A stretch of 64,000 nt of DNA from Corallochytrium limacisporum Hawaii (lineage: Eukaryota; Protista; Pluriformea). The notes below the pieces were generated by a model, which saw nothing but the letters and a program-made list of their open reading frames with translations, made no database searches and was not told where the DNA came from. The DNA lies in the NCBI GenBank assembly GCA_002811645.1, contig PDIP01000004.1:1-64000 (forward strand), in the 5' to 3' direction. A program made the translations under genes and the position numbers. Below are positions 4,633-45,111 of the stretch, one piece after another (position 1 is the first letter of the stretch; every line of letters begins with the position of its first letter).

Positions 4633-6129
4633 ATGCCGGCGGTAGACACGCAAATTGACCAGGATCCTCCTGTGCAGGAGGAGCCGCAGCGATCCCGACG
4701 CAAAACAGCCAAAAAGCAGCAGAGGTCTGCAGCTGGTAAGAAGCCTAGTGCTGCGTACTATGTCGGATATGTCGACGATATGGAAAGTGTGGAGAGCATC
4801 ATGAAGAAGTTTGCTGCCCTGGAGGAAGTGCAAAAGAAGACAGACGAAGGCTCTTCCGCAGGTGACAAGAGTAAGAGTGGCATGGACGACAAGGCATTAG
4901 AAGAAGTCTTCAAGCAGACCTCCCACTACAGTGTGAACCAGCTTACTAAAGACCCTGAAGCTGCGTATCTGGATGAGTTCGATCACTTGGATAACAATGA
5001 TCTACGTGATCTTTTGCATGGAGAGGACGTGGTCAATGCTGATGACTTCTTTGAGGAAGAAGATGACATGGATAATGAAAAACTCGACTGGGAGTGGGGT
5101 TCAAAACGGAAAGATGGCAAAACTGGTGTTCGTGGAAAAGGGTTCGACCGCGAGGCACTGCTGCGTCGCTACCGTATTATGCAGATGCAGCTCCAGGATC
5201 ACAACGGGCATGCCTACACCATTACCAAACAGATTCGCATCGTCGACCCTTCTCTACCGATCTTTGTGCGCATTCCACCACAGCCGCTGCCCCTACCTTG
5301 GGGCAAGACGCTCAGCTGGGATTTAATGCCGTCCTCATTGCCGCTTAGCACCGGAGCAGACGATCTGCCAGAACGATGCCATGTGTACGAGGCTGACATT
5401 GTGGAGGACAACATTGGTCAGACACTAAAGGGATATGCCTTTGAAGGTATTTACATTGACGCCCCTTGGTTACGCAAGGGCCAGGACCCAGAGGCTCCTG
5501 AGAGCAAAAATCACATCGCCATCACAGAGCTGGCCAACTGGAAATGGATCCAGCAGCTGGTGCCCTTCGGCTTCGTCTTCATCTGGATAGAAAAAGAACA
5601 CATCCCACTGGTCTTTAAAACCCTCGAAAACTGGGGCTTTGTGTATGTAGAGAATCTCTGCTGGGTCCGCCGTGAGCCAAACGGAAAGTTCACCACGGAC
5701 GACTACGAAATGCTTCGAGAGGCCAAGAGCACACTGTTCATATTCCGTCGACCGCGCAAGGACCGCTCTGCCACTACGCCCGATGTCGATCTTCGCCATC
5801 AGCGCAACTCTGACGTTCTCTTTGACTTCGTACCCTCCAAATTTGGTGATTCTGACCGTCATCCGTGCTGCCGCAAGCCCGATAAGATCTTCGACACAAT
5901 CGAAACCTTGCTGCCGAACGGTCTGGCCAAGGAAGACAAGATCGAGTCCTACAAACTACTCGATCTCTTCACTCACGACAATGCAAAGCGTGAAGGATGG
6001 GTCCATGTGTACCACACTGGGTTTGAAGATATTGAAATGGATTCTAAGCGCATCTCAGATGGTTGGAATGCTGAAGATGCTCTGTGCGATGCGGTCCGGC
6101 TAGTAACTGTCGAGGATGACACAGAGTGA
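4633..6129 (+). CDS. MT-A70 family protein, AMT6/7 (MTA9)-like subunit of a DNA N6-adenine methyltransferase complex
   Basis: MT-A70 signatures IYIDAPW (degenerate DPPW), GFVFIWIEKE, WGFVYVENLCW, LRHQRNSDVLFDF, RKPDKIFDTIETLLP, LLDLF..REGW; first ATG at 4633. Confidence 0.8.
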   Translation: MPAVDTQIDQDPPVQEEPQRSRRKTAKKQQRSAAGKKPSAAYYVGYVDDMESVESIMKKFAALEEVQKKTDEGSSAGDKSKSGMDDKALEEVFKQTSHYSVNQLTKDPEAAYLDEFDHLDNNDLRDLLHGEDVVNADDFFEEEDDMDNEKLDWEWGSKRKDGKTGVRGKGFDREALLRRYRIMQMQLQDHNGHAYTITKQIRIVDPSLPIFVRIPPQPLPLPWGKTLSWDLMPSSLPLSTGADDLPERCHVYEADIVEDNIGQTLKGYAFEGIYIDAPWLRKGQDPEAPESKNHIAITELANWKWIQQLVPFGFVFIWIEKEHIPLVFKTLENWGFVYVENLCWVRREPNGKFTTDDYEMLREAKSTLFIFRRPRKDRSATTPDVDLRHQRNSDVLFDFVPSKFGDSDRHPCCRKPDKIFDTIETLLPNGLAKEDKIESYKLLDLFTHDNAKREGWVHVYHTGFEDIEMDSKRISDGWNAEDALCDAVRLVTVEDDTE

Positions 6130-6138
6130 AAGAAATCA

Positions 6139-6453
6139 TCAGAAATGAGAACTTACCTCTGTGTCCTGGGTAATGCCATGGTAGTAGTACATGAGAATGG
6201 CACCCGTGAAGAAGAAGACGTTACCAAGGACTGCGAATACGTTAACCACTTCCGAAAACATGGAGTAAGCCGCAAGCTGCTTTAACACAATACAAGCAAA
6301 CGAGTATAGCAGAGCAGCACGGTGACCGGTGTCAATGTACTTGTGGCTAGCCTTGCCAGTTCGCATAGTTCGGTACTTCATGACACCGCCGAATAGTGCA
6401 AGGAGCATGCAACTTGCAGAGCCCGCGAGTGCGTAGACTTCTGCCGGTTCCAT
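6139..6453 (-). CDS. small multi-TM membrane protein resembling a bacterial hypothetical family, possibly 3'-truncated or spliced
   Basis: three hydrophobic segments; motif KY..M...G.A.H.YID..HRAALLYSFA; GTAAGT donor at 6156 just before the stop. Confidence 0.55.
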   Translation of the reverse strand: MEPAEVYALAGSASCMLLALFGGVMKYRTMRTGKASHKYIDTGHRAALLYSFACIVLKQLAAYSMFSEVVNVFAVLGNVFFFTGAILMYYYHGITQDTEVSSHF

Positions 6454-20106: not shown

Positions 20107-22669
20107 TCACCCTGCGTATTCATCGGCACCAAAAGTTCCGGACGATCCCACACACAATGCGCGACTGCACGATTATGTTCTGCGCATACCAACACCCCTT
20201 AATACCCTCGGAACTTCCCTCTAAAGCGTACAAGCCAATCAGATTGACCCCCTTACATGGAAACATAATTATATACGGAGCATTTTATTATTTTAGATAC
20301 TCACCTCCTCGACTGTGCTTGAGAAAGTGAAATATAAATTTTCCGGATGAATATATTGAGTCAATTCATTTCACAACTGTGTCCGGAACCGGTTGGCAAA
20401 AAACCCCTTGCTTGTCGCTACGTGCTCGCCTCCCTCGCGGCCCTACAGTTTTCCACCAGTTTCCCTGCAATTTCCCGGCCCACAACCTCCCCACCCCCGC
20501 ACGCGGACGACAAGCGTTGCCGAGTATTCTGCGGGCGTTGCTGCGACCGTCTTTGACACGAGGAACATACCCTGTCGTTGCTGTCTTCGGTTTTAGAGCA
20601 AATTTTTGACGGAACAAGAGTGTGTGCCAATGCGATGGAAAACATGTGCGACAGGGGGGGCGAGCTAGACGAGAATGTGTGCGAGGAGATTTTCGTTCGA
20701 CGAAGTTTTGGCTTTATTCATAAGTTTTGCACATCGCCATCTGTGATTGGGGATGGTACTGTAAGTCTGAGGATAGACGAGCAGGGGTACACACGTCTCC
20801 TTGCTTTCTATAACACCGTCTGTGTGAGTACACAATGAACTCGTACCGCTCATTTCCCTTAGTGTTGACCTCTGGTTCATTTTAAGGGATTCTCTGATCT
20901 CTTACTGCTCTGACTATGTGCATACATTTCTGGCTGCAGTCTTACAGTACCTGATCTTATTGTCTCACACTAAGCGATGTGACAAAGTTTGGAACTCTAC
21001 GTGCTCACTATTGACGCAATATTACGTCTTTTAGATCCACGCTCCGACTACAACGATATGTTCATACCACAGCGCATCGTGTACAGCACATAGCCGATCC
21101 CTCAGAGTCATGGACTGTGGGCTGTCGGCAACCACCAGAGGTATGGCCGATTGGGGCCACCGAATGCTAAAGGAATGAATTTGTTTGATAACAGTGTGAT
21201 GATGTAACCGCCTTCACCAACCTCCCCCTTTCGATTATCGACGTCTCCATCGACAACCCGTAAGGAGCCATCGAACGCAGAAAAGGGGCGGTGTACGTTG
21301 CCCGACTGTAGTGAACTTTCCGTCGATGATTACATGGAGAAAATATCTTTATGTGGCGACATAGCCACCCCAATGACAGACTGGTTGCTTGTTTGGTAAA
21401 GGCGGAAAGAATACGATGTCTTGGATTCACATCTGTTTAGCTAATGAATTATGAGCGACCACGCGACGACCTTCAAGGATGACCGGTCTGCTGAGGCTTT
21501 GGAGGGCGACTTGGGGCCTGAATAGGCACTTCTATAGTTTGCCTACTCTTCAGGTGTGTCTCCTCTCTCGACGCAGGTGGCGGTTGGTAAAACCCCCCTC
21601 CTTCACCACTGACTCCGGCTCTCGCTTGCAAAATCGCACAGGGCCAGTTGTCAAAGGCATTTCGGTATCTCTAGTAAGTCCTTCAGGGCGCTAGTTTCGT
21701 CCTGTCAAGAATTACAGAAAGGTCTATAGGTACGCAACGTGGACAGTCTGCACATCTGATTAGTAAGTGTACTAGCGGCAACAAGAATTGTCCTGGTTTC
21801 ACCATACAGCGGTCGGTACCTAGTTCATGATAAAAGCATTCATACCGAAAATGGGCCACCGCAATACCTCCCGTGAAAATTTTGCGGGGGTGTGAGCACA
21901 GAACATGTGGGGTGCCGAAACACACTTCATTGTGGTATAATACATGTATATTATTGTCCCGGAAGTGAAATATATCATTTTCATCGCCGTTTATATATGT
22001 CTGTTCTGCCGTATACTAATTGATCCCCCGCAAGAGGCTTCCCAAATAAAGATAAGTGATGCTACTGAAAGAACTTGAAACATTAAACGTGGAATAGTGA
22101 AACCAAAGGTACATCGGCGCGTAGGAAATGTACTGTTGTACCGTAGACGATTGGAGGTGCAAAACGGGTAAACTGATCTGAAAAGCAATGCTGAGTTCAT
22201 GGCGGAGACATGACCTACGCGACCGAGGCGTTCACAAAGACTCAAGAAGGTTCGCAATTTTTTTTACCTTCATTCAGTATGTGCCACACTTCTGCAAAGT
22301 GTGCAAGGGTGGACACCAGCACATCAGACCATACAGCTCCCCAGACGAGTCCGAGTATCCCGTAAGAGAGACAAGGAGGACATTTTGGGCTATGCTGCCA
22401 CACACGCATAAACAAGATATCCAAAACCGGAGTTCTTTACCGGGTGCTGTATAAAGTATTCAGTTCTGGAAAACACATCCTCACGGAAACCCCTCGGGCG
22501 GAGCAAATCTCCGGCGGTGTTTATTGATAGGAGGTCAAGGTCACTGTTGGCCGTTCTGTCTTGGTTTCAATGCTCTACTAATATGCCTGCTTATGCGTGC
22601 TGTGTGCATGCAGCATCCACTGCGCACTGTAGTATCTGTACGACAAGAAGAGCACGGCAACAAGCAGGT

Positions 22670-22920
22670 NNNNNNNNNNNNNNNNNNNNNNNNNNNNNNN
22701 NNNNNNNNNNNNNNNNNNNNNNNNNNNNNNNNNNNNNNNNNNNNNNNNNNNNNNNNNNNNNNNNNNNNNNNNNNNNNNNNNNNNNNNNNNNNNNNNNNNN
22801 NNNNNNNNNNNNNNNNNNNNNNNNNNNNNNNNNNNNNNNNNNNNNNNNNNNNNNNNNNNNNNNNNNNNNNNNNNNNNNNNNNNNNNNNNNNNNNNNNNNN
22901 NNNNNNNNNNNNNNNNNNNN
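22670..22920. other. assembly gap (251 N)
   Basis: run of n. Confidence 0.99.
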
Positions 22921-24767
22921 ACGGCGATCAAGTGATGTTTCACCGGAAACTAAGGACAAGGTCATTGGCCTGCTGAAACAAGGCATATCCGCTGCACGCG
23001 ACGTGGAAAAGACCCCTGATATGTTTGCAAAGAAACTTCCAAACGGGTTGACCGACAAAGTTTGTAAGTTATCCGGCACCGAGCCTAGGACTGTGCGAAA
23101 GCTTTGGAATCAGTACGTGAAGGCGAAGAGTAAGGCACAAGCAAAGGGAGACGATGTGACGACACCAGATGTTTTCCAGCCCAAAAAGCGCACTGGCCGT
23201 CCGAGGAAACAACTGTCCTTGAGTCCGCTCCAAAATGGTGGTGTCAGATACCGGTCATACAGAGAATTGGCGGCTATCATGAGCGAGCAAAGCGGGGTAA
23301 AGGTAAGTGAATCTCTGATCAGGAGAAGGAAACAGTCAGGAGATTTGCAGGTTTGCAAAGTAAGACGCAAAATATATTTGGACAGTGATGCAATGCAGAG
23401 CAGAGTAAAATTCATTCTCGAATTGATCGCCGACGAAGGAAGGTTTCCTCCTTTCGACGACGTCATCTTCATCGACGAGAAGTGGTTCTATCCACACGTT
23501 AAGAACCTGAACATAGCATATGCAGGAAATGAAGAGAATGTGCGAAGAGTCCAACATGTCAATAGGGGCCACAGCGAGAGCATAAAGTCTATGTTTATTG
23601 CTGCTGTTGCAAAACCTAGGACATGGGTCTCGAGCTTCGGTCTTCAGGAGAACGAATTCGATGGAAAGTTGGTTTGTCATCCTTGTGTAGAAGAGACTGT
23701 AGCGAAACGAAAGAGCAAGAACCGTGATCGAGGAGACAAAGTCGTGAAACCTGTGAGTGTGACTGGCAGAACACTACTCGCTTTCTTTGATCAAGTGCTG
23801 TTCCCTTCGGTGGTGCAGAAGTGGCCGACAACGTGGCCTAAGTCGCGCCCGATTTACATCTGGCTTGATAATGCACGACCCCATTGTGCCTTGGAGAAAA
23901 GCTTGAAGACAGAATGGGAACAGGTTCATGGTCGCTGGCTTGAGAATACCTCCTATGACTTTCGGCTGCGCTTCCAGCCGAAACTGAGCCCTGACCTAAA
24001 CATTCTTGATTTGTCTTTGTTCCGCTCTCTGGACAGGGCGCGGCCAAGTCCGAGTCTAGTGAAGATGAACACTATAGAGGAAGTTATGGAGACTGTCTTA
24101 ACTGCATGGAAAGATTGGGATCCTGATTGCCTTGCCAGAGCTTTTAGAACCTTACAAGATGTCATGGTAAAGATCTTGGAGCACAAGGGTGGGAATACGT
24201 TCAAACTACCGCACTCGAGAAAGACACCGTCTGGACACTTGAACTACGGTGAGGCAATTATAGACGACGCACTCATACGTGAGGCTCTGGCATATATGAA
24301 CGGGTTTAATTGTGTGTCAAGAGCGGATCAAGATGACCGACAAGATTCTGACACTGATGAAGATGAGAACGATGACGAATCCACATCGCTTGGATGTATT
24401 CTGGGAGTCCAAGATACGTGTCTCAACTACAACTGTCGGCAAGATCCCCCGGTCTCATACCAAACAACACCAATGAGAGGGTTGCAATGGTTAAACAGAC
24501 TGCTTTAATGATATTGGCAACGTATTTGATCCCTTGGAGAGTTGTTATGACCGTGGTCAAGCACAGGTCTGACAACATCACCCCGCAAACAAGCGGAACA
24601 TCCAGAAACACAGAAACGAAGTGCTCAGTGATTCGAATATTTTAGTTGCCTCATTGATTTCATTATATAGTTAACATTTACATTTGTCTGTTGAATCGAA
24701 TAAATAATCATATAAATCACGATCCGGTATATATTTTCGAACGAAAATTTTGGTTGGATACGGAGTA
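22921..24767 (+). mobile_element. Tc1/mariner (plant/oomycete-type DD39D-related) DNA transposon; left end probably lies in the gap
   Basis: transposase ORF plus candidate right terminus ...GGATACGGAG|TA at 24756-24767 (reverse complement TA|CTCCGT..., resembling Stowaway/mariner ends with a TA target site). Confidence 0.75.
22922..24508 (+). CDS. mariner-like transposase, 5' end in gap
   Basis: AT-hook KRTGRPRK, FIDEKWFY, K.MFIAAVAKPR, A.R.SKNR..G, DNARPH, QP..SPDLNILDL..F.SL, GGN.FKLPH; open from the gap to the stop. Confidence 0.9.
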   Translation, partial: RRSSDVSPETKDKVIGLLKQGISAARDVEKTPDMFAKKLPNGLTDKVCKLSGTEPRTVRKLWNQYVKAKSKAQAKGDDVTTPDVFQPKKRTGRPRKQLSLSPLQNGGVRYRSYRELAAIMSEQSGVKVSESLIRRRKQSGDLQVCKVRRKIYLDSDAMQSRVKFILELIADEGRFPPFDDVIFIDEKWFYPHVKNLNIAYAGNEENVRRVQHVNRGHSESIKSMFIAAVAKPRTWVSSFGLQENEFDGKLVCHPCVEETVAKRKSKNRDRGDKVVKPVSVTGRTLLAFFDQVLFPSVVQKWPTTWPKSRPIYIWLDNARPHCALEKSLKTEWEQVHGRWLENTSYDFRLRFQPKLSPDLNILDLSLFRSLDRARPSPSLVKMNTIEEVMETVLTAWKDWDPDCLARAFRTLQDVMVKILEHKGGNTFKLPHSRKTPSGHLNYGEAIIDDALIREALAYMNGFNCVSRADQDDRQDSDTDEDENDDESTSLGCILGVQDTCLNYNCRQDPPVSYQTTPMRGLQWLNRLL

Positions 24768-25402
24768 TACATTCAACTCAGAGGATAGTATTTTTTCTTT
24801 TTTTTTTGCGCACTTCATTTGAGAGAGAAAATACTAATATAGGAATAAATTGAACTTCATTATGGTACAGGAAACTTGATATACTAAATTGGTACGCCTA
24901 CGGGCAAAGCTGGTCCTGTAGGAGTACTGTTCGCAAAGTATTAACTAGTTCACAAAAGCTCCCAGCTGATGCTCGAGGGCCGAAGGCATTGATAGTTCCC
25001 TGTCGCCTGCACCAAACTTGTGAGAGTAGAAACATGGCCCACTGTGATCAAGTGGATATAGTGATGCCCCTAAGAGTGGGTCTGTAACATGTCCCGTTTC
25101 ATTCCGCTCGTTCGATGGTGCACTATTGGAGCCCCTTGTATCCAACCCTCCCCATCGGTCCGTTACCTGGCCGGGGTGGGTCTGGACGCGGCCGGCGAAA
25201 AAGCCAGTGGCTGGGACGGGGGAAAGCCAACATACGAGAGCTGTCATCACATCAGCCAACAACCTCACAGGCGCCGATTGGGGTATTAAAGGACAGTGCT
25301 AAGGGATCACAAACGAAGGGGAGCTGCCTGCCTAACGCTTCTTTCAGTGAGTGGAATTTGAACTAGCAGAATCTAGTGTAGAGCCACAGAAATTGCGACA
25401 CA

Positions 25403-27055
25403 ATGGTTGCGAGCATGAAGGTCGCCATGGCCGTTTTGATGTCGGCAACGGTCTGCATGGGCCAATTTCCTTTCGACGAGTCCACTGGTGGATTCCAGCC
25501 CGCAGACGGAGATAATCCTGATGATACTCCTGTGTACAAAATGGATAACCGCGTTCTGATCATCAAAGGGTCAAACGCCAGCGCATCAAGGTACCTTCAT
25601 GACCCTACCAGCGAGTCGTACATGTTCCAGTTTCAGTGGTATGGTATTCCATTTGAGTCATATACAGTACCAGGATCTGGGCAAGATTATTTGCAGAATC
25701 CTGAGCCTACTAGATTCCATCATTTGACGTTTGGCAATGATGATGGAGCGGAGAACCCGATTGAAACTTGGTATAAAACCTTTGACTACAAGATTGCAAA
25801 CGGCCTTGAGAACGGAGAGAATTATGGTCGTTACAGCGGTATCTTCATCCTGCCTAATGCAGCCATTAGCCAGGATGACTTGCGTGACATCTTCGCGTAC
25901 GCCGAAAAGTATGGTGCCCGTGTCGCCGGCTGGAGCGGTCAGTTCCCGGGGTCAATCAAGGGCATAACCTCAGTGCCGCCATTGACAGCTGACGAAGCAC
26001 GAAACATGCAGTTCACCCAGAAAGGCAGAGAATTTACGGACACGATCATAGATCCAAACTACAAATTCAATCTCGCTGAGATTGAAGTCGTGTATAACGA
26101 AGTTGTTACCCTTGACGAAGACCCTGGTAAGACCGAGGCCCTTGTACAGGATCCTGAGTCTGGCAAGACCATCCTCAGCTACCATCAAGTGCGTCCCGGT
26201 GTCGAACTGATGGCAGTCTGGTACACTCTAACCTATTATCAGCAGGACGCGTGGCCCCTGTTCTTGCCTATTATTGAGTTTCTTTCTCGTCGCCATTGGA
26301 CTGGCGCCCGCCGCATTCACCTGAACAACGTCATGACCAACTGGTACATGTTCCCCGAGGTGCGCAGCCCTCTTTGTGTGAAACTAGCGAGTTTCTGCTC
26401 TAACGGGAGTGGTCGATTCGAGACTGATGTTGCAAGATTCGAAAAACTTTGGGCCTTCCCAGTCCCGAACTATGACTGTTCGCGCCCGCAGAGCTTCTGT
26501 GATTCCAGCCAAGTAGACATCACGTACGACGATACGAATGCGATGTTCGCGTGCGAGCCCGTGACCACTTACGAGTTCAACGGTTCATACGATTTGATCG
26601 GCATGCAGCTTTCTTCTACGGAGGGCTGCGAGAACTTCTTATTCACCACTACGTCCAAGGCAAACGATCTTAAGCTGACATTCGACGATGGAACGGAAGT
26701 AAGCAAATTCGCGGAGTACGGCCCGGACATCAACTACATGATCCCGATGACCGCTGGCGAGAATCACATTTCGTTTGACCAAACGCGGTACAACTACAAA
26801 CTTGACAAGGTCGTAAATGTGACAAGCCCGCCTCCAGACGGCGGAGACGACGGTGACGGAGGAGACGACGGTGACGGAGGAGATGAAGACAATGGAGGGA
26901 GCGATGGAGACAACGGCAATGAAAACGACAATGGAGGCAGTTCGAGGGACAATGGTGACTCGGGACAACTTGATGGAACATCTTCGGGCGGCGATGCTCT
27001 CAGTGTTGGTGCAATCGTAGGTATTGTTATTGCTGGCGTGGCTGTGGTTGCATAA
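25403..27055 (+). CDS. Agd3-derived (CBM87-like) surface protein, paralog 1; stop within the TM, in-frame tail continues to 27184
   Basis: signal peptide, RVLII, WYGIPF, G.YSGI, IFAY..KYGARV, G.ELM, FLSR..W.G.RRI.LN; C-terminal C.P...Y...C..EYG.D; G/D-rich stalk; TAA at 27053-27055 where the paralog has Leu. Confidence 0.75.
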   Translation: MVASMKVAMAVLMSATVCMGQFPFDESTGGFQPADGDNPDDTPVYKMDNRVLIIKGSNASASRYLHDPTSESYMFQFQWYGIPFESYTVPGSGQDYLQNPEPTRFHHLTFGNDDGAENPIETWYKTFDYKIANGLENGENYGRYSGIFILPNAAISQDDLRDIFAYAEKYGARVAGWSGQFPGSIKGITSVPPLTADEARNMQFTQKGREFTDTIIDPNYKFNLAEIEVVYNEVVTLDEDPGKTEALVQDPESGKTILSYHQVRPGVELMAVWYTLTYYQQDAWPLFLPIIEFLSRRHWTGARRIHLNNVMTNWYMFPEVRSPLCVKLASFCSNGSGRFETDVARFEKLWAFPVPNYDCSRPQSFCDSSQVDITYDDTNAMFACEPVTTYEFNGSYDLIGMQLSSTEGCENFLFTTTSKANDLKLTFDDGTEVSKFAEYGPDINYMIPMTAGENHISFDQTRYNYKLDKVVNVTSPPPDGGDDGDGGDDGDGGDEDNGGSDGDNGNENDNGGSSRDNGDSGQLDGTSSGGDALSVGAIVGIVIAGVAVVA

Positions 27056-28335
27056 GTCGTGACACTCTGCCTGTGCTGGCGCAGGCGAGGTGGCAGCGAC
27101 AAGGTCGCCAGCAACAACCGCCGCTCCAACAGTGGTGGCGCTACACCAGATGGTGACTCCTTCGGCCGCGAAAGCGCGGTGTGAGTGCCACTCGAATTAT
27201 AGCCATATGTTTGTAATAGATATGACTGCTCCAGATTTGCGTACCCTGCAGCAACATCACCAGCCATTTCGGTATCCGTTGCCCCCCCCCCGCGCGGGGC
27301 CCAGCTCCCCGCCGCCCGGGCCCAGTGGTTTTTATTGCTCCGCCGATTCGCTCTCACTATCCGTATGTGTATAATGTGCTATTGTGAAATCAGCGGCCCG
27401 AATCTTTCGGTCTACACGACTCGTCCGGCGTAGGTAACCTGTCGCGATGATTTGTTCCCGCTCTCCAAGGGATAATAAGGCCCTCTGTCGTTGCGCAAAT
27501 CACCCATTGTCGGGGGATATACCATACAGTCCACTAGTGTATTGTAATCTTTAAATTGGTATACTGTGTCGCAAAGAGTCTCGCCTGCTGTACGCAACTG
27601 TTTGCTATTTTTAATCGAGTTGTGGCGGCAAGGTCCGAGAGTTTCAAGCCCTGCCACTCTATCCGGATTTGGGTAAGCGGTCGGAGTACATGGACACGGT
27701 TGGGTCTCGAATTTTGCCAGCCCCTTCACACCCTCCCCCCCCTCTTCCCCTTTTTTGCCCTTCGGTGTCTCCCCGTGTGACGGTCAAACCCCCCCCCCCC
27801 CCTCCGGCGGTTCTCCCCAGAGTGGGGGTGGGCGGTGGAACGTGGTAAATCTGGCCGAGCCGCCGGCCCGATGAAACGGGAGAAGGAGACTGGTGGGGGA
27901 AAACCTATGAGGCCTCCTCCCCACTCTTATCGGCTTTTTCTGCGAGCGCACGACTTATGGTAATGAATTAGGAATACACCCACCATACACCCAAGTATCA
28001 CAAGTAGTTTGCTGGCCTATACGAATGCGCGGGAAGGGGCCAGAGGTGTGTTCCAACCCGATGGGAAAGCCAGATTCTCTGAGAAAGGGGGGAAAGCCTA
28101 TGGATCATCACGAACACATCTGTTTGTTGTGATCCTGTGGTCCAAACCAGAGATGACGAATAGAATCCTAATGCGTTCCTCAACCAGCACGTTGCAAACT
28201 GGTGTGGATGCGAGGTACAAAAGGGACATTGCTCCGTAACACGATAGAGCAGGCGTCGTTTTCAACTAAGACTGCACACAGGAGTGGAATTCGAGCTAGC
28301 AGGATCTAGCGTAGAACCACTTAAATATTGACATA

Positions 28336-30069
28336 ATGGTTGCGTGCATGAAGATCGCTCTGGCTGTGGTGATGTCGGCAACATTCACCATGGGCCAATT
28401 TCCTTTCGATGAATCCACCGGTGGGTTCGACGGTGACTTCAAGATGGACAATCGCGTTCTTATCATCAAGGGTTCGAACATCGGCGGAGAAAGGTACCTC
28501 CACGATCCTACCAGCGAGTCGTATATCTTCCAATTGCAATGGTACGGCATTCCTTTTGAGTCGTACACGAAAGGAGACGGGTACAATTATTTGCAGAAGC
28601 CCGAACCCACTGAAACTCACCATATAACCTTCGGCAATGATGACGGTGATGAGAACCCGATCAGAACTTGGTACAAGGACACGAGTTTCACCCTTGACAC
28701 AGGTCTGGAAAACGAAGAAGGGCATGGTCGGTACAGTGGCATTATTATCCTGCTTGATGCTGAGCTCAGCAACGAAGACTTCAGCACCATCTTCGCTTAC
28801 TGCGAAAAGTATTCTGCTCGCATTGTCGCTTGGAACTATGGACTACCAAACCTTTTGGAGGGCATCACTCGCGCAGATGAGACTACTGATCCCTTAACTG
28901 ATGCCGAGGCAGGAAATATGCAGTTCACCGACAAGGGCAAACTATTCACTGACTCTTTCGATCATGAGTACACATTCAATCTCGCTGAGATTGAGGTCGT
29001 ATATAACGAAGTGGTCTACATTGAAGAGAATCCTGGAAAGACCGAAGCCCTTGTACAGGATCCTGAGTCTGGCAAGACCATTCTCAGCTACCACCTTGTA
29101 CGACCCGGTGTCGAATTAATGGGCGTCTGGTATACTCTAAACTACTTCCAGCAGGACTCCTGGCCCTTGTTCTTCCCCATCATTGAGTTTATTTCTCGTC
29201 GCCATTGGACTGGCGCCCGCCGTATTCACCTGAACAACGTCATGACCAACTGGTACATGTTCCCGGAGGTGCGCAGCCCACTGTGTGAGAAACTATCATC
29301 ATTCTGCAACGATGAGGGTGATGGTCGGTTTGAATTGGCAGTCTGGGAATATCCCGACCACTGGAACTTCCCAGCACCGAACTATGACTGTTCGCGCCCC
29401 CAGGCGTTCTGTGACTCGAGCGCAGAGGGCGTGGATATCACGTTCAATGACACTGTGGCGATGTTCGCATGCGAGCCTCTGACCACATACGAGTTCAACG
29501 GTTCATACGATTTGATTGGCATGGAGTTTACATCTACTCAGGGCTGTGAAAACTTCCTGTACACCACGACCGCTCTGGCCAACAATCTTAAGCTGAAATT
29601 CGACGACGGAACGGAAGTAAGCAAGTGGACAGAATACGGTGTGGACAACAACTACGTGATTCCCATGACCACTGGCCAGAACCATATTAACTTTGATGAT
29701 ACGCTATACAACTACCGCACCGACAGCATCACCGTCGAAGGCGAGGACCCAGAGAACGGAGGTGGTGGTGATGGATCTGACGATGGTGGATCTGGAGATG
29801 ATGGATCTGGCGGCAATGGAGGAGACAGTGGTGGAAGTGAAGGAGACGATGGCACATCCTCTAGCAGCAGCGGTGGCCTCAGCATCGGCGCGATTGTTGG
29901 TATTGCCGTCGCTGGTGTTGTCGTAGTTGCTCTTGTCGTCGCATGCTTCCTGTGCAGGCGCAGGCGTAGCAATGGCAAAGACGCTCGTAACACTCGCCGA
30001 CACAGCGGCAAACGGAACAGCAACAGTAGAAGCGGCAGTGACTACTTCTGCCGCGAGGTTGATGTGTAG
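28336..30069 (+). CDS. Agd3-derived (CBM87-like) type I membrane protein, paralog 2 (intact)
   Basis: same domains as paralog 1, then a Ser-Gly/Asp stalk, TM GAIVGIAVAGVVVVALVVACFLC, RRRR, and a tail ending -EVDV. Confidence 0.8.
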   Translation: MVACMKIALAVVMSATFTMGQFPFDESTGGFDGDFKMDNRVLIIKGSNIGGERYLHDPTSESYIFQLQWYGIPFESYTKGDGYNYLQKPEPTETHHITFGNDDGDENPIRTWYKDTSFTLDTGLENEEGHGRYSGIIILLDAELSNEDFSTIFAYCEKYSARIVAWNYGLPNLLEGITRADETTDPLTDAEAGNMQFTDKGKLFTDSFDHEYTFNLAEIEVVYNEVVYIEENPGKTEALVQDPESGKTILSYHLVRPGVELMGVWYTLNYFQQDSWPLFFPIIEFISRRHWTGARRIHLNNVMTNWYMFPEVRSPLCEKLSSFCNDEGDGRFELAVWEYPDHWNFPAPNYDCSRPQAFCDSSAEGVDITFNDTVAMFACEPLTTYEFNGSYDLIGMEFTSTQGCENFLYTTTALANNLKLKFDDGTEVSKWTEYGVDNNYVIPMTTGQNHINFDDTLYNYRTDSITVEGEDPENGGGGDGSDDGGSGDDGSGGNGGDSGGSEGDDGTSSSSSGGLSIGAIVGIAVAGVVVVALVVACFLCRRRRSNGKDARNTRRHSGKRNSNSRSGSDYFCREVDV

Positions 30070-30969: not shown

Positions 30970-32733
30970 ATGCCGTCCCTTACGTCCGACGAGCAGCTTG
31001 CTCGCATGTTGCAAATGGAAGAGGAAGGAGGAGGAGATTACTATGGAGGCTGGGTGGACCAGGAGGAGTCCGACGGTTCAGACGGGGAATGGGGCCGTCC
31101 GAAGAAGAAGGCTAAATCAGTGTCTCGTAAACGGGCACCGAAACCCCCTCCTTCCCCACGCGAAATCTCCGACAAGGGACGCAGGATCCGCAGGGATCAG
31201 GGAAAGGCCACAGCAAGGTCTGTTCAACACTGGAACTCTGAAGAAACCGACAAATTCTACAAGGGAATGATGGTATGGGGACGCAACTGGCAGGCAATCA
31301 GTGAATACTTGGGTACATGCCGCGATCCTCGCAACATTGCCTCCAAGGCTCAGAAATGGTTCGTAAAGCAATATGTCGAGCGTAAGCCACTGCCTGAGGT
31401 AATGGGCAAGACTACCGGTTTCGGATACACACTCAGCGGTAAGCCGTTGGACCCGCAGTCGACGGCCTTGAGCAAGTTCGGCGGCTCGAAGTACCTGAAA
31501 GAGAAGGACAAATTCTCACCGCCACCGCAAGATGGCACCAAGCTCCCGGAGTGGGAGAGCATTACAACTGTGCTGCCCGCTGAGGAAGTTGAGGAAATGA
31601 AGCGCCAGCGTACTGCGAATTGTGAGGCTGGAAAGGTCTTTGACAAGGAGGCTAGTGAAAAAGCCAAGGCTGCCGAGGCCGCGGCTCGAGAGAACCAGGA
31701 CCCGAACGGTCAGCCTGGCCCGGTGAAGACTGTCAAGGCTATCCCAACGAAGTCGCGCCGGCAGCGGTGGGAGGAGCACCAAAAGATTGTGGGCCGTTTC
31801 GTCACAAAGAATGAAGAGAAGCCGCCGACCCGCGAGAAGAAGGAGCGTAGGGCTAAGACACAGGCCACCGGCTTTATGAACCTCGACTCACAGGGTCATT
31901 CACACAATGCATTGATGATGGTCCAGTGCACACAATACGCTGAGGACACTCAGCCCTTCGCCGTCACCGTGGCGCCCTGGGTCGACTTTGTCATGGATTG
32001 CCATGCCCACTTGGCCATGTCAGAGATTATTGGCTTCTTGGCAGGGACATGGGATGCCGAGACCGCCACACTTACCGTCCAAGAAGCCTTGCCATGTCGC
32101 TCACTGGCACTCGGTACCACGGAGACGTCGGTTGAAGTCGACCCCGCAGATGAAGTACGGGTCCGCGACCTGATTGCGGAGAAGGGCTATCGCTGTGTCG
32201 GCTGGTATCACAGCCATCCCACCTTTAAGCCCATTCCCTCGCTACGTGACGTCGAGAATCAGCATAACTACCAAATGCTGTTTAATCGCGACAACACTTT
32301 TGACAGTCCTTTCGTGGGCGCAATTGTCTCCCCTTACGATCGCGATCTCCCAACTATGCACTCTAAAACTTCATGGTTTTACGTCGCCCCTGGACAACGG
32401 GACAGTGCTATGGTGTTGAACATGAAGAACAGTCTTGACGCGACCATTGATCCCGATGAAGTCTACGACAAGATCAATTCTCTCTGCGATATTTGCGTTG
32501 GCGCTCTGGAGCGCATCCATTCACTAGCAGAGGTTTGGCGGATGGAGGGTCCAAATATGGACCTCGACGGACGAGAAGATGGAGACCAAGTGCCACGTAC
32601 TATTTCTGAGAAGATGAACTTCTCACTTCGGCTGGCACTCACGCGCCACGGTGTCAAGATTGACGATGCGGAGCAGGCCGTGACCATGGCTCTCGAGATC
32701 ATTGCTGGCAACTGGGAACTGGACATGGAATGA
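30970..32733 (+). CDS. Myb/SANT + MPN/JAMM deubiquitinase (MYSM1/MPND-like)
   Basis: ubiquitin-binding-like SDEQLARMLQMEE, Myb WNSEE..KF..G...WGRNW..ISEYLGT, MDCHAHL..SEIIGFLAG.W, JAMM GWYHSHP.F.P.PS.RD; first ATG 30970. Confidence 0.85.
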   Translation: MPSLTSDEQLARMLQMEEEGGGDYYGGWVDQEESDGSDGEWGRPKKKAKSVSRKRAPKPPPSPREISDKGRRIRRDQGKATARSVQHWNSEETDKFYKGMMVWGRNWQAISEYLGTCRDPRNIASKAQKWFVKQYVERKPLPEVMGKTTGFGYTLSGKPLDPQSTALSKFGGSKYLKEKDKFSPPPQDGTKLPEWESITTVLPAEEVEEMKRQRTANCEAGKVFDKEASEKAKAAEAAARENQDPNGQPGPVKTVKAIPTKSRRQRWEEHQKIVGRFVTKNEEKPPTREKKERRAKTQATGFMNLDSQGHSHNALMMVQCTQYAEDTQPFAVTVAPWVDFVMDCHAHLAMSEIIGFLAGTWDAETATLTVQEALPCRSLALGTTETSVEVDPADEVRVRDLIAEKGYRCVGWYHSHPTFKPIPSLRDVENQHNYQMLFNRDNTFDSPFVGAIVSPYDRDLPTMHSKTSWFYVAPGQRDSAMVLNMKNSLDATIDPDEVYDKINSLCDICVGALERIHSLAEVWRMEGPNMDLDGREDGDQVPRTISEKMNFSLRLALTRHGVKIDDAEQAVTMALEIIAGNWELDME

Positions 32734-40683: not shown

Positions 40684-43600
40684 ATGTCTTGCCAAGGAAA
40701 TACCAGCGATGTCGATGCTGTCCCGTGTACCATTGATACGGGAAGTGATTCAGCCAGGTCTAGTATTGGTTCAATGGAAAAGACTTGCCAATTCAACCAC
40801 AAAACAGGATCTGGATCTCATGCCGCGTGCAATTCACCCCCACGCACTGTCCCTCGAGACACCTTCAACCAGCGGAAGAGGCATGCAGGGGATCCACCAT
40901 CCGATGAACGGCAAAAGAAACCTTGCCCACACTCGGAAAGCGCCGGACCTCCGATTGGAAGACAGTCAGGTTCCCTGCATTCAGTTTGGACCCTCCGCAG
41001 GGGGGCGCGCCGGATGAGTGTTGGCCAGCGTCGCAGTGTATCAGAAAGTGCCAAGCCACAGGTGAGTCCCAAGGCAGCAGCAAGAATGCATGGCAAGAGT
41101 ACTCTGAGAATAAGGACTGAGGCCAGTCAAGATACGCTATCACATATCCAGGCAAGCCCGCCACCAGCATCCAGGCCCACTACACCTCCAAAATTGCAGC
41201 TAAGATTACCGGCCCGACCCAGAATACGTGCAGATCCCTCGCTACGAAAGCCCTTAAAGCAGCAGGTTCTAGAACAGGACCCGGAAGCAGCAGCAACGCC
41301 GAGACAGTCAACGGCATTGACTGAGATTGTCAATCAAGAAGAGCCTAACCACGAGTCAGACACCGATGCGGCTTTTGAGCAACGCTTCGCGACTGATGTG
41401 GTTGATCAAGACGTGCTGGATCATTTCACACAAAGTAAGGCGAAGAAAGAACAAAACTCTGTCCAAAGTCAGGAACAGGCGAAAGAATTGCTAACTGAAG
41501 AATCTGCTATCTATCTCGGACGCACCCGCAGGGCTGCAGCAGCACTCAACTCCATTGAAAGGGAAGCTGTCGAACCCAAAGGAACAGATAAGCAGCCCAA
41601 TCTGAGCACGCGAACGACTCTGTACGTTCCTCGCGATCTCGGCTGGGAATCAGCTGTACAGGCACTTGGAAAAGAGTTTGCAGCAACGTTAATGGGTCGA
41701 CGGAAGGGTTGGATTGATAGGTATGATGCCATACACAAGAATGAAAATGGGAAATACAGAGTGGACAAGACCATGAAACAATGGATCAAGGACAAGGAGG
41801 AGCGCGAAATCAAAGCCAAGGAAAAGCAATTGGAAAAGATGATTGATCATGTGGACGACGGAAAGGAAAGTGTTACGATAGAGGATTCAGGACATGAAAA
41901 CGATGAACTTTCCCATGAACAATTGGAGACTGTGTTTGATATCGTAAAACCTTTGTTGGAGCCCGAAGGATTTAACGGAGACGTGGTGCTCATGGTGTCT
42001 GAGGAAGATTACTCAATGCATCTCGCAACCGGCGAAGACCTGGAACCTGTGCTCGTAACGGAGACTCTGGTGGTCCTGGCGTGTGTGGCATGGCGAGACC
42101 TCGACTCATACACAAGATGTATGAACCCGTATTGCGCTGTTCCCCTGACCATTGAGGAATACTTCTGCGGAGATTGCAATGACAGAGACCAGATTGGAGT
42201 ACATTTATGTCTCAAGTGCTTCCAGCATCTGCTCACTGGTATTAATGAAACCCTCAATCATCGACACCCCCGCGAGCACTTCCGAAGACGAAGGATTCCA
42301 CCAACTTGGCTGGAGTTCACAGGCTCGCTCTTCAAGGAGCGATCTCTGCTTTTTGCATGGGATCGAAAAAGTGGTAAAAGGTGTCTGAGACGCTTGGGAT
42401 ACCTTAACCCAGGCCATCTTAGCTCCAATCGCATCGGTGGGGTACTTGTTCGGGACAAGTTCATGCTACAGAATCACCGTGACACTTCCATGACCCTCAG
42501 CAGTGCTCCTCAATGTGTATTCTGCGGTCGAGATGACTTCGATGAGGCTGTCCTTGGGGAGATTGGAAAGCTATCGAAAGAACTTGTTTATATTAGTGAT
42601 TGCGAGGGCAGTCGTCATGCTCCCAAGAGGGGATCAGGCTACTACCCATGCCATCTCACTTGTGTAAAGTTCGCGGATCTAGTCCACTACAATCCCCAAA
42701 GCAACACATGGTACAACATTGATACGCTCTACCACCTGAGCAAACAAAACAAGTGTTCAGTATGCCAGCACCCAGGTGCAACATTAGGCTGCATGACTTC
42801 CAGATGCCGTGATGTTGTTCATGTACCGTGTGCCGACATCAACGTTAAACTTCTGGAAGAAGGAATCTTGTATTGGTGCAAGAGATGTCGTCGGGAATCC
42901 TACAATCAGCAGACCGAGACTTTCAAGTGTGATGGATGTTCTGTGCCCATCAAACTAGCCCGATGGACCTGCAAACAATGTGAAACGAAGTCCTATCCGT
43001 GGAAGTCATTCGATCTATGCCGTGCTTGTTTCTGGGGCAATCGAGGGTCACACCATCACGACCGTTGCGAATTCAAATCTGTCCGCGTTTACAGCGAGGG
43101 ATATCAAAGGAAACTTGCAGCACCGAGGCCCCGGTTTGGGACCAACAGTACACCAAAGTGCATCTACTGCCTGGCTGAGATCAGTGATGGTGTGAGATGC
43201 GGCAGGACGGGCGTTGGGGGTGGCCCAATCTGCATTTCATGTGCCCTCGTATGCTTTGAGCATAGTGAGCTCGGCTGTCCTAACGGCGCAAAGATTAGCG
43301 CCGAAGAGTATGACTACAATTCATACCTTACCCGGTATAGCCTTTCCACAATGACGAACAACGATACACGGCGAAATCACTTGCCCAAGGTGTTACCGTC
43401 ATACGGTCCACACCCCAAGGACTACTACAGTATTCATCTCCAGCATTCCTATATGGATATCCCCGGGAGGATTCGTCGGTGGGCAACACATGATTACGGG
43501 GATTATCTGGGAACTTGGATTCCCCAGATCCCTCGCTGGGCGATCCTGCGATACACGGCAGAAGGGGATCGGGTCTTGAGCAATTTTGCTGGCCGGGGGA

Positions 43601-45111
43601 CTGATTTGATTGAGTGTTTCCTACTGTCGCGCAAGTCCGTCGGTGTCGACATCAATCCTTTGGCTGTCGGTCTGAGCCATAGAAATTTGGCCTTTGCCGT
43701 CCCGGTGAAGCTGCAAAGACATGTCAGTAGTCGATATAGGCCTTTGGTTATTCAAGACGATGCTGCAGCCCTCAGGGCATCAATCTTCAAGCCCGACATG
43801 TTTGATCTCGTTCTGAGCCACCCACCTTACTCTAACTGCATTGTGTACTCGACACAAATTGCTGAGGATCTCAGTAATCAGGGTGACCACGAGAGCTTCT
43901 TCGAGGCTTATCTTCAGGTGGCAAGAAGCACTCACCGCGTCGTCAAACCAGACGGTCATGTTTTGCTTGGGATTGGAGACAATAGGATGGTCACGAGGAT
44001 CGTACCTGTTGGATTCAAAACCATAATGTGCTATCTCCGAGAAGGCTTTGTGATCGAAGAACTTATCGTGAAGCGCCAAAAGTATTGCTCGGGGACAATG
44101 GATATCGGCGCACTTCTCGCAGCTATGCATGGCTTCTTGATCCTAACGCATGAATATCTTGCGGTTTTCCGTAGGCGCAAAAGCACAGATGTCATGATAC
44201 CCTCTTTGCCACTGTGGACGGAAGTGGACGCAGGGCGAAAGCAGAATATTTCATGTTTTCGCATCCCACGCCTGTACGGTCCATCAAATACCGCGGTAAT
44301 GGGAACTACGTGGTTACTTTGCAGCTGCCGGGACATGGAGCTTCAGGCCGTTACAAAGCTCGTGCTGCGTTACGCTTTTGAAGGAGATATTTGCGGGATC
44401 CTTGGGAGCGCTGGCCGGCCAGATTGGGTTGAAACAACAAAGAAACGGTCAAAGAAGTGTTTCTGTGAGCTCGAATCGCGCAAACAAAGAAAGGACTTGC
44501 AAGAATTGCAGCATGCTGAGGAGAGTGAATATGAACGTCAACGTTTGGAGAACATAAAGAGTAATGAAGAAGCCCTGGCTAGGATGGGATTGAAGCAACC
44601 CTCTACAGATGTATTGCAGGCATCAGTGGATCGCGTTGTTTCGGCACGGTTGAAAACCAGGTTTACCGTCTGCTCGGAAGCTGTGATCGATATTATGATC
44701 ATCTTCTCCACATTGGCACAGAGCAAAACGAACGAAGGGCTCAGTTGGCATGACTGCCATATGATAACTGCGGACACAGTAGCACGGACAAAGAGTGCTC
44801 TGCACAGTCTCAGACCTGGTTGCAGTCGACTGGCTGTTGCATGTTCAGACTTTCGAACCAGTCAAGGAATCGTCTACCCTGGCGCAATGTATCTGGAAAA
44901 ACACTTGCATGAGCCAGTAAGGAACGCACAGCTCGGTCTCAAGGAGATCATCATCATGACTCGTCATGATGCAGCCTGCAATGGCTGGTCAAAGAAACGA
45001 CATCCATTCAAGAGGAGTCGACCATTTCGCTGGACCATGGAACCACAGATGTCCAACGCGGAACATCTCCCGATCGTTCACTGGTACTTTCTTCTCTATG
45101 AACCCTTGTAA
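40684..45111 (+). CDS. multidomain amino-DNA methyltransferase (N6A/N4C): ZZ, extended PHD, ZZ, GATA-like Zn finger, MTase (HPPY), KRI-like helix, degenerate second MTase
   Basis: Cys/His fingers (FCGDC..CLKCF..H.H; C..C..H..C..CSVC...GATLGC....C....H.PC..WC..C; FKCDGC..WTC..C..FDLC..CF); RWATH..GDY.G.W.PQIPR..ILRY...GD.VL.NFAGRGT, GVDINP, DL.LSHPPY, RV.KP.G....IGD.R. Confidence 0.85.
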   Translation: MSCQGNTSDVDAVPCTIDTGSDSARSSIGSMEKTCQFNHKTGSGSHAACNSPPRTVPRDTFNQRKRHAGDPPSDERQKKPCPHSESAGPPIGRQSGSLHSVWTLRRGARRMSVGQRRSVSESAKPQVSPKAAARMHGKSTLRIRTEASQDTLSHIQASPPPASRPTTPPKLQLRLPARPRIRADPSLRKPLKQQVLEQDPEAAATPRQSTALTEIVNQEEPNHESDTDAAFEQRFATDVVDQDVLDHFTQSKAKKEQNSVQSQEQAKELLTEESAIYLGRTRRAAAALNSIEREAVEPKGTDKQPNLSTRTTLYVPRDLGWESAVQALGKEFAATLMGRRKGWIDRYDAIHKNENGKYRVDKTMKQWIKDKEEREIKAKEKQLEKMIDHVDDGKESVTIEDSGHENDELSHEQLETVFDIVKPLLEPEGFNGDVVLMVSEEDYSMHLATGEDLEPVLVTETLVVLACVAWRDLDSYTRCMNPYCAVPLTIEEYFCGDCNDRDQIGVHLCLKCFQHLLTGINETLNHRHPREHFRRRRIPPTWLEFTGSLFKERSLLFAWDRKSGKRCLRRLGYLNPGHLSSNRIGGVLVRDKFMLQNHRDTSMTLSSAPQCVFCGRDDFDEAVLGEIGKLSKELVYISDCEGSRHAPKRGSGYYPCHLTCVKFADLVHYNPQSNTWYNIDTLYHLSKQNKCSVCQHPGATLGCMTSRCRDVVHVPCADINVKLLEEGILYWCKRCRRESYNQQTETFKCDGCSVPIKLARWTCKQCETKSYPWKSFDLCRACFWGNRGSHHHDRCEFKSVRVYSEGYQRKLAAPRPRFGTNSTPKCIYCLAEISDGVRCGRTGVGGGPICISCALVCFEHSELGCPNGAKISAEEYDYNSYLTRYSLSTMTNNDTRRNHLPKVLPSYGPHPKDYYSIHLQHSYMDIPGRIRRWATHDYGDYLGTWIPQIPRWAILRYTAEGDRVLSNFAGRGTDLIECFLLSRKSVGVDINPLAVGLSHRNLAFAVPVKLQRHVSSRYRPLVIQDDAAALRASIFKPDMFDLVLSHPPYSNCIVYSTQIAEDLSNQGDHESFFEAYLQVARSTHRVVKPDGHVLLGIGDNRMVTRIVPVGFKTIMCYLREGFVIEELIVKRQKYCSGTMDIGALLAAMHGFLILTHEYLAVFRRRKSTDVMIPSLPLWTEVDAGRKQNISCFRIPRLYGPSNTAVMGTTWLLCSCRDMELQAVTKLVLRYAFEGDICGILGSAGRPDWVETTKKRSKKCFCELESRKQRKDLQELQHAEESEYERQRLENIKSNEEALARMGLKQPSTDVLQASVDRVVSARLKTRFTVCSEAVIDIMIIFSTLAQSKTNEGLSWHDCHMITADTVARTKSALHSLRPGCSRLAVACSDFRTSQGIVYPGAMYLEKHLHEPVRNAQLGLKEIIIMTRHDAACNGWSKKRHPFKRSRPFRWTMEPQMSNAEHLPIVHWYFLLYEPL

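Follow-up and report, generated by a model that had tools for sequence, protein, structure and literature searches.

An internally deleted, CE18-less branch of the Agd3 family in the unicellular holozoan Corallochytrium limacisporum

Introduction

What remains of a polysaccharide deacetylase when its catalytic domain has been cut out, and what might the remainder do? The question is raised by two tandem genes of Corallochytrium limacisporum Hawaii, a free-living, osmotrophic relative of animals (PMC8061703). They lie in a window of 64,000 nucleotides (positions 1 to 64,000 of contig PDIP01000004.1; assembly GCA_002811645.1, 24.1 Mb in 286 contigs), the DNA of which is eukaryotic and intron-poor. 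A first-pass annotation, made from the sequence alone, had related both genes to Agd3, the deacetylase of galactosaminogalactan (GAG), whose fungal and bacterial homologues are described in the literature as enzymes with three domains (PMC7229062, PMC4817252). Here we show that gene 1 and gene 2 are descendants of the Agd3/CE18 family from which the catalytic barrel was removed internally. They are Agd3 descendants with a CBM87-like domain, for which binding is predicted, and not members of CE18.

Descent from Agd3

The motifs on which the first-pass annotation had based the kinship with Agd3 are present in the translations of both paralogues, and the kinship itself was borne out by profile, HH and structural matches to 6NWZ, the structure of Aspergillus fumigatus Agd3 (CBM87, CE18 and a C-terminal beta domain; PMC7229062). 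With single sequences, the CBM87 model (PF25116) matched gene 1 at E 0.0097 (16.1 bits against a gathering cut-off of 27.6) and gene 2 not at all; a related barrel-less gene, C249, exceeds the cut-off with 30.4 bits. Profiles of the barrel-less sequences detected 6NWZ in the PDB at E 9e-7 (8 rows) and 2e-11 (11 rows), with nothing else below E 0.1, and the 11-row match spans the CBM87 core through the strand bearing motif CM1. Profile-profile (HH) probabilities were 98.7 to the full-length paralogues of the same genome and 98.3 to bacterial homologues.

The ectodomain of gene 2 was also modelled with AlphaFold, barrel-less rows being the only input (pTM 0.80); Foldseek ranked 6NWZ first for this model (E 1.9e-9). 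With VIA-align, the model was superimposed on chain positions 143-805 of 6NWZ over 318 residues (Z 27.0, root-mean-square deviation 3.4), the next structure being NDST1 (9F6Z, Z 13.9), and its best matches in a structure atlas were proteins of 565-753 aa, the named ones Agd3-like, with TM scores of 0.56-0.68. Since CBM87 accounts for 224 residues, the 318-residue match must take in the C-terminal domain in the Agd3 arrangement. The model has the three-part order of Agd3; its CBM87, an alpha/beta/alpha fold homologous to Agd3 141-364, and its C-terminal beta domain are packed in the manner of 6NWZ.

When folded alone, the C-terminal domain of gene 2 forms a helix and a beta-sandwich that align to 6NWZ 718-806 (85 of 96 residues) with Z 5.0, a modest score common to many glycosidase sandwiches, among which 6NWZ ranks 14th. 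HH comparison with the corresponding domain of the full-length paralogues gave a probability of 80% (E 1e-5), and PF25117, the model of the Agd3 C-terminal domain, matched neither the barrel-less genes nor the full-length paralogues. Homology of this predicted domain to that of Agd3 is favoured by its position and by the whole-model match. The retention of both CBM87 and the C-terminal beta domain, as originally proposed, is supported by the 6NWZ profile and structural alignments.

Excision of the CE18 barrel

The features of both genes are listed below; the offset of +122 between the 6NWZ chain and Agd3 numbering was checked on D377/D378, W344, W292 and D242 (TM, transmembrane).

25403-27055, + strand: gene 1, reference-strain allele; single exon, 550 aa; signal peptide, CBM87-like domain, deleted CE18, Agd3 C-terminal-like domain, acidic Gly-rich stalk, C-terminal hydrophobic stretch
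25535-26296, + strand: gene 1, N-terminal strand and CBM87-like domain (aa 45-298); Y231, Y279 and S178 correspond to W292, W344 and D242 of Agd3
26336-26341, + strand: gene 1, T312/N313 where Agd3 has catalytic D377/D378 (CM1), by gapless profile alignment to 6NWZ
26525-26791, + strand: gene 1, former last barrel helix and Agd3 C-terminal-like beta-sandwich, 74% identical to the modelled part of gene 2
26828-26995, + strand: gene 1, acidic stalk rich in Gly, Asp and Ser
27053-27055, + strand: gene 1, TAA within the TM helix; present in DNA runs X1 and X2 and RNA-type run X3, TTA (Leu) in run X4 from another sample
27056-27184, + strand: gene 1, remainder of TM helix and cytoplasmic tail, coding in the allele of the other isolate (593 aa in total)
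28336-30069, + strand: gene 2, single exon, 577 aa, a complete type I membrane protein
28336-28395, + strand: gene 2, signal-peptide-like N-terminus, judged by eye from the sequence
28438-29205, + strand: gene 2, N-terminal strand and CBM87-like alpha/beta/alpha domain (aa 35-290); Y223, F271 and N167 correspond to W292, W344 and D242
28492-28518, + strand: gene 2, RxxHxPxxE motif (aa 53-61); H56 and E61 invariant in 11 of 11 barrel-less members
29212-29250, + strand: gene 2, retained first CE18 barrel strand, ending in T304/N305 in place of D377/D378
29251-29442, + strand: gene 2, four-Cys loop of ~65 aa standing for Agd3 ~379-717; model confidence low
29443-29709, + strand: gene 2, former last barrel helix and Agd3 C-terminal-like beta-sandwich (aa 370-458)
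29737-29874, + strand: gene 2, acidic Gly/Asp/Ser stalk with 4 Ser-Gly pairs
29875-30066, + strand: gene 2, TM helix (peak aa 520-538, mean hydropathy 3.06), basic stop-transfer and 37-aa tail

From the GxRR strand to the YG strand of the C-terminal domain, the barrel-less proteins measure 138-141 aa, against 394-459 in the catalytic paralogues, and ~340 residues of the CE18 barrel (Agd3 ~379-717) have been exchanged for a loop of ~65 residues. The CE18 domain (PF25115) is a distorted (beta/alpha)7 barrel of ~370 aa. Its proposed loss was confirmed: there is no PF25115 match and no barrel in the model, and CM2 (HxxxH), CM3 (Arg) and CM4 (MxH) are gone. An intact deacetylase fold, which the first-pass annotation had named as one outcome that would overturn it, was detected neither by the PF25115 search nor in the gene 2 model. 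The replacement of the metal-binding DD by TN was likewise read correctly, as D377/D378 align to T304/N305 in gene 2 and T312/N313 in gene 1; T304/N305 is identified as the counterpart because the alignment is gapless across the strand from GxRR to CM1. Neither protein can be a CE18 deacetylase.

The first-pass annotation had the catalytic domain replaced by a four-Cys loop. A ~65-aa loop is indeed seen, but the deletion is internal, with the first barrel strand and the last helix left in place. Gene 2 holds the four Cys (317, 324, 352 and 359, within aa 306-369), but they mark only 5 of 11 members. Descent of the loop from the barrel was rejected, as it gave no profile match to 60-residue windows along the CE domain; nor has it detectable likeness to the first 390 residues past CM1 in full-length homologues. 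Hidden exons or an assembly gap behind the absent domain were also ruled out: contigs from four runs are joint-free with nothing missing, so the absent barrel is not a gene-model error.

Expression, selection and strain differences

The genes are tandem and intronless, with ectodomains 69% identical over 478 aa, and both are transcribed and under purifying selection. RNA-type contigs extend joint-free over gene 1 (~25350-27480) and over gene 2 (28277 to at least 30021) and leave the spacer uncovered, as expected of separate transcripts (two runs and samples, the RNA nature of which is an automatic guess from the reads). The ratio of nonsynonymous to synonymous substitution rates (dN/dS) between the ectodomains is 0.19 at dS ~1. 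The most alike tract of the pair (26051-26350 and 28960-29259; 86% over 300 nt) has a dS of ~0.5, against 1.6 upstream, and may reflect gene conversion; the 5' leaders (25349-25495 and 28282-28428) are also alike (82%).

The type I layout of signal peptide, single TM helix and tail is found in gene 2 and in the gene 1 allele of the other isolate. In the reference strain, the gene 1 stop falls inside the TM helix, so the protein is tail-less. Beyond the TAA the frame runs on to a TGA at 27182-27184, and dN/dS between the genes over TM helix and tail is 0.21. Sequencing error and an alternative genetic code were ruled out as explanations of the TAA: both DNA runs (X1 and X2) and the RNA-type run X3 contain it, and the alternative code was rejected because TAA terminates other genes. 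In its composition (small residues, a spacer, 19 hydrophobic residues and no tail) the truncated end resembles a glycosylphosphatidylinositol (GPI) signal, which we infer it may be. Between samples, gene 1 shows 7 coding-site differences, 4 of them altering the protein, including the stop; zero are listed for the covered part of gene 2.

No domain, signalling domains included, was recognized in the tails (37-39 aa). As patterns only, the tails end PDZ-ligand-like in S-A-V (27173-27181) and V-D-V (30058-30066), and the stalks carry 2 (gene 1) and 4 (gene 2) Ser-Gly pairs.

A clade of barrel-less paralogues

A genome-wide count, which the first-pass annotation had suggested as a check, revealed at least 11 genes with this deletion, spread over five or more contigs: the window pair, C250a, C64, C250b, C227, C241, C249 and three C275 genes (C275a-c). 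Outside the tandem pair they are 18-43% identical. Their C-termini vary. C250a has a GPI-signal-like end, and C64, C250b, C227 and C241 carry thrombospondin repeats (TSP1; mainly TSP3 in C227) followed by a TM helix, lost at the locus end in C241. C249 ends in a weak hydrophobic stretch, and C275a-c are tandem and anchorless.

Eighteen other loci match the CE18 model, and DD, HxxxH, Arg and MxH are kept in all ten full-length paralogues aligned. Four catalytic paralogues (C88, C264, C283 and C46) have a TM helix; further examples of CE18-bearing loci are C178 and C277. As these four enzymes are anchored and some barrel-less members are not, anchoring and loss of catalysis are separate events. 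The earlier view that stalk, TM helix and tail were appended on loss of the enzyme thus applies only in part: they are present in gene 2, but the anchor did not come from enzyme loss, and gene 1 is truncated in this strain.

In a tree with seven bacterial outgroups, from which the long C174 row was left out, the 11 barrel-less genes form one clade (support 98/99; one mis-cut row, L066, is to be ignored, and no fungal Agd3 is among the rows), nested among Corallochytrium CE18-bearing loci. Trees with one outgroup and C174 included gave this clade support of 93/93 and 75/42, the single outgroup of the former being mis-cut; branches are long in the trees. A single clade fits one deletion followed by expansion.

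C174 itself (4953-6164, minus strand, of its locus L019) encodes 404 aa; of the Agd3 domains it has just CBM87 (E 2e-16), joined to a stalk and a TM helix, while CE18 and the C-terminal beta domain are both missing. A Cys-rich C-terminal repeat module is common to the barrel-less C275b and C275c and the full-length C31, C50 and C240; on C275c it had no Pfam match.

Occurrence outside Corallochytrium

In the searches made, a CBM87 protein with the C-terminal domain and without CE18 was not found outside this genome. With single sequences, phmmer against 1.84 billion representatives returned four Corallochytrium proteins only, and word-seeded searches, covering targets of 0.55-1.75 times the query length, returned self, Corallochytrium proteins and one bacterial full-length homologue. 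A metagenome contig scan revealed no relatives, and all scores of an ESM feature search stayed below 0.9. Across 242 bacterial genomes, the frames with CBM87 matches are, with few exceptions, at least 640 aa long. Four of these genomes (G007:C354, G042:C291, G061:C324 and G076:C66) have CBM87-only frames of 313-314 aa and no CE18 match genome-wide, suggesting that CBM87 was freed from the enzyme elsewhere too, in a different form. Bacterial genomes G003, G006 and G036 carry 8-11 CBM87 genes each, many above 1000 aa; there, Agd3-like proteins have expanded in parallel.

The architecture had been thought undescribed, and we found no literature description of a CE18-less or CBM87-only form in searches that left subscription journals largely outside. 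Within the same coverage, nothing relevant was found on Agd3, galactosamine or GAG in Corallochytrium. Literature placing Agd3 homologues or a GAG pathway in a holozoan was not found.

Proposed function and alternatives

The best explanation overall, to which we give slightly better than even chances, is that the proteins tether a polymer that is rich in galactosamine and produced by the cell that bears them. The exposed CBM87 cleft would bind an alpha-1,4-linked polymer of N-acetylgalactosamine (GalNAc) or galactosamine (GalN), resembling GAG or Pel. This polymer would be made by a PelF/Gtb3-type synthase of Corallochytrium, trimmed by its own Agd3-like deacetylases and GH114 hydrolases, and tethered to the cell surface by the proteins, or used by them to bridge cells and surfaces. 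Low affinity per domain would be offset by many membrane copies, and the acidic ectodomain (75 D/E against 29 K/R in gene 2) would favour the cationic, deacetylated form. From the gene 1 stop allele, the same ectodomain is probably made in a form that is shed or carries a GPI anchor.

A candidate ligand pathway is present in the genome. A 3125-aa open reading frame on C181 (141083-142546, minus strand) carries DUF3492 directly followed by Glycos_transf_1, a combination that we take to be the core of a PelF/Gtb3-type exopolysaccharide synthase and that also adjoins a bacterial Agd3 homologue. Six GH114 (Ega3-family) genes lie above the Pfam cut-off (C22, C207, C234, C176 and C29), three with E < 1e-65. 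Together, the synthase-like core and the GH114 genes make a self-made GAG/Pel-like ligand plausible, as judged from gene content. HSNSD-CE had no match in the genome, the search control being silent. As for the cleft, the isolated CBM87 of Agd3 folds and binds GAG, (GalNAc)6 and (GalN)6, with W344 weighing most among the residues probed by Bamford et al. (W344, W292 and D242; PMC7229062). The W344 column holds F271 in gene 2 and Y279 in gene 1 and is aromatic in 9 of 11 members. With two cleft aromatics kept and D242 lost, the cleft appears partly kept.

Several observations weigh against a tethering role. Sequence identity to Agd3 is only 14%. Both Agd3 Trp positions hold smaller aromatics in the window genes, the W292 column (Tyr in both) is not conserved family-wide, and D242 has become Asn in gene 2 and Ser in gene 1. 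The most conserved residues of the family, H56 and E61, are new rather than inherited binding residues. Even the CBM of Agd3 binds hexamers weakly (Ka ~180-400 per M), and the fold does not guarantee binding, as in NDST1 the cleft of the homologous N-terminal domain is occluded, and that domain may have its role in dimerization (PMC10864358). The candidate synthase is assigned from its domain matches, Spherulin4 (Sph3/GH135) had no match in the genome, where the positive control was equally silent, and no chemical evidence for GAG in Corallochytrium was found in the literature. Of the earlier proposal that an enzyme became a non-catalytic lectin or receptor, the loss of catalysis therefore stands, whereas the binding or receptor role is inferred only, with D242 lost and no signalling domain.

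The His/Glu motif could point to another function. H56 and E61 are invariant in 11 divergent members and unconserved in the catalytic paralogues, D242 is lost, and the domain has a class I glutamine amidotransferase-like fold, on which the active sites of other families are built. A neofunctionalized surface protein, with a new site on these residues for a different glycan, a metal or a new non-CE18 activity, is unlikely but deserves serious attention; the domain has no conserved nucleophilic Cys, and the motif may simply pack on the new loop and cover the surface bared by loss of the barrel. We consider it rather improbable that the proteins are non-catalytic partners of the polymer machinery, holding or passing the nascent polymer or pairing with catalytic Agd3 paralogues to set the deacetylation pattern. 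The clade did arise within a family of ~18 enzymes, some membrane-bound, the CBM of Agd3 directs where deacetylation takes place (PMC7229062) and the NDST1 N-terminal domain was proposed as an oligomerization aid (PMC10864358), but the genes are unlinked to synthase or enzymes, and the TSP1/TSP3 repeats of four members point to adhesion.

Those same repeats, along with long stalks, TM or GPI-like ends and the erosion of the tested binding residues, would also suit glycan-free protein-protein adhesion or a structural wall protein on an Agd3 scaffold; with the key W344 position aromatic in 9 of 11 members and a likely ligand pathway in the same genome, this is improbable. That the genes are decaying duplicates or gene-model artefacts is very improbable and largely refuted. 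The stop in this strain and the 7 coding differences (4 protein-changing, stop counted) could be so read, but the DNA contigs agree with the assembly and reveal no joints or hidden exons, both genes lie under RNA-type contigs with a dN/dS of 0.19, and at least 11 members on five or more contigs carry the same deletion.

Relation to known systems

In the gene 2 model, the kept parts follow the order and packing of Agd3: the N-terminal strand, the CBM87 fold, the first barrel strand, the last barrel helix and the C-terminal beta-sandwich. Secreted topology and aromatics at W292 and W344 are further likenesses. Unlike Agd3, the window genes have lost the CE18 barrel with CM1-CM4 as well as D242 and carry the new His/Glu motif, the Cys loop, a stalk, a TM helix (cut short in gene 1 of this strain) and, in gene 2, a tail; their host is a unicellular holozoan, and they lie outside any GAG cluster. 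The full-length Corallochytrium paralogues belong to the same family, are nearest in the tree and in several cases share the stalk-TM-tail ending, but keep CE18 with DD, HxxxH, Arg and MxH. The stand-alone CBM87 frames (C174 and those of G007, G042, G061 and G076) also have CBM87 without CE18. However, they end before CM1, the bacterial ones leaving little room for a C-terminal beta domain, whereas the window genes are internal deletions retaining that domain.

In NDST1, the heparan sulfate N-deacetylase/N-sulfotransferase (9F6Z; PMC10864358), a homologous non-catalytic domain precedes an Agd3-like deacetylase, but this is a Golgi type II enzyme with an occluded cleft and a sulfotransferase where the beta-sandwich would be.

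The passage from carbohydrate-active enzyme to non-catalytic binder is a theme common to the GH18 chitinase-like proteins, enzyme-derived lectins that kept the catalytic barrel and lost its residues. In the window genes, by contrast, the barrel was excised and the accessory domains were kept.

Genomic surroundings

There is no polysaccharide cluster around the gene pair, the neighbours being a transposase and a MYSM1-like gene. A Tc1/mariner-type transposase open reading frame (HTH_Tnp_Tc3_2, DDE_3; 22517-24508, plus strand) lies directly upstream of gene 1, with an assembly gap (22670-22920) within its span. Downstream of gene 2, a MYSM1-like Myb+JAB protein is encoded (30970-32733, plus strand), for which Pfam reported no SWIRM. 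Further on, a 1475-aa protein (40684-45111, plus strand) combines an N6/N4 DNA methyltransferase domain with zinc fingers of the PHD-like and ZZ types.

Implications

A natural, stable protein of CBM87 and the C-terminal domain without the barrel indicates that the Agd3 scaffold is modular, and such a protein would lend itself readily to probing the biofilm polymers GAG and Pel. For Corallochytrium, which is closely related to animals and can be transfected (as cited in PMC8061703), it offers a testable idea on the make-up of the wall and its attachment to the cell, and the natural stop/Leu polymorphism of gene 1 provides a built-in test of anchor type. More tentatively, and with the balance of our judgement somewhat against it, a unicellular animal relative may possess a full GAG/Pel-like matrix system (synthase, ~18 deacetylases and GH114 hydrolases) together with deacetylase-derived matrix-binding receptors, some bearing thrombospondin repeats, as an independently evolved adhesion system of matrix and receptors whose building block was a homologue of animal NDST.

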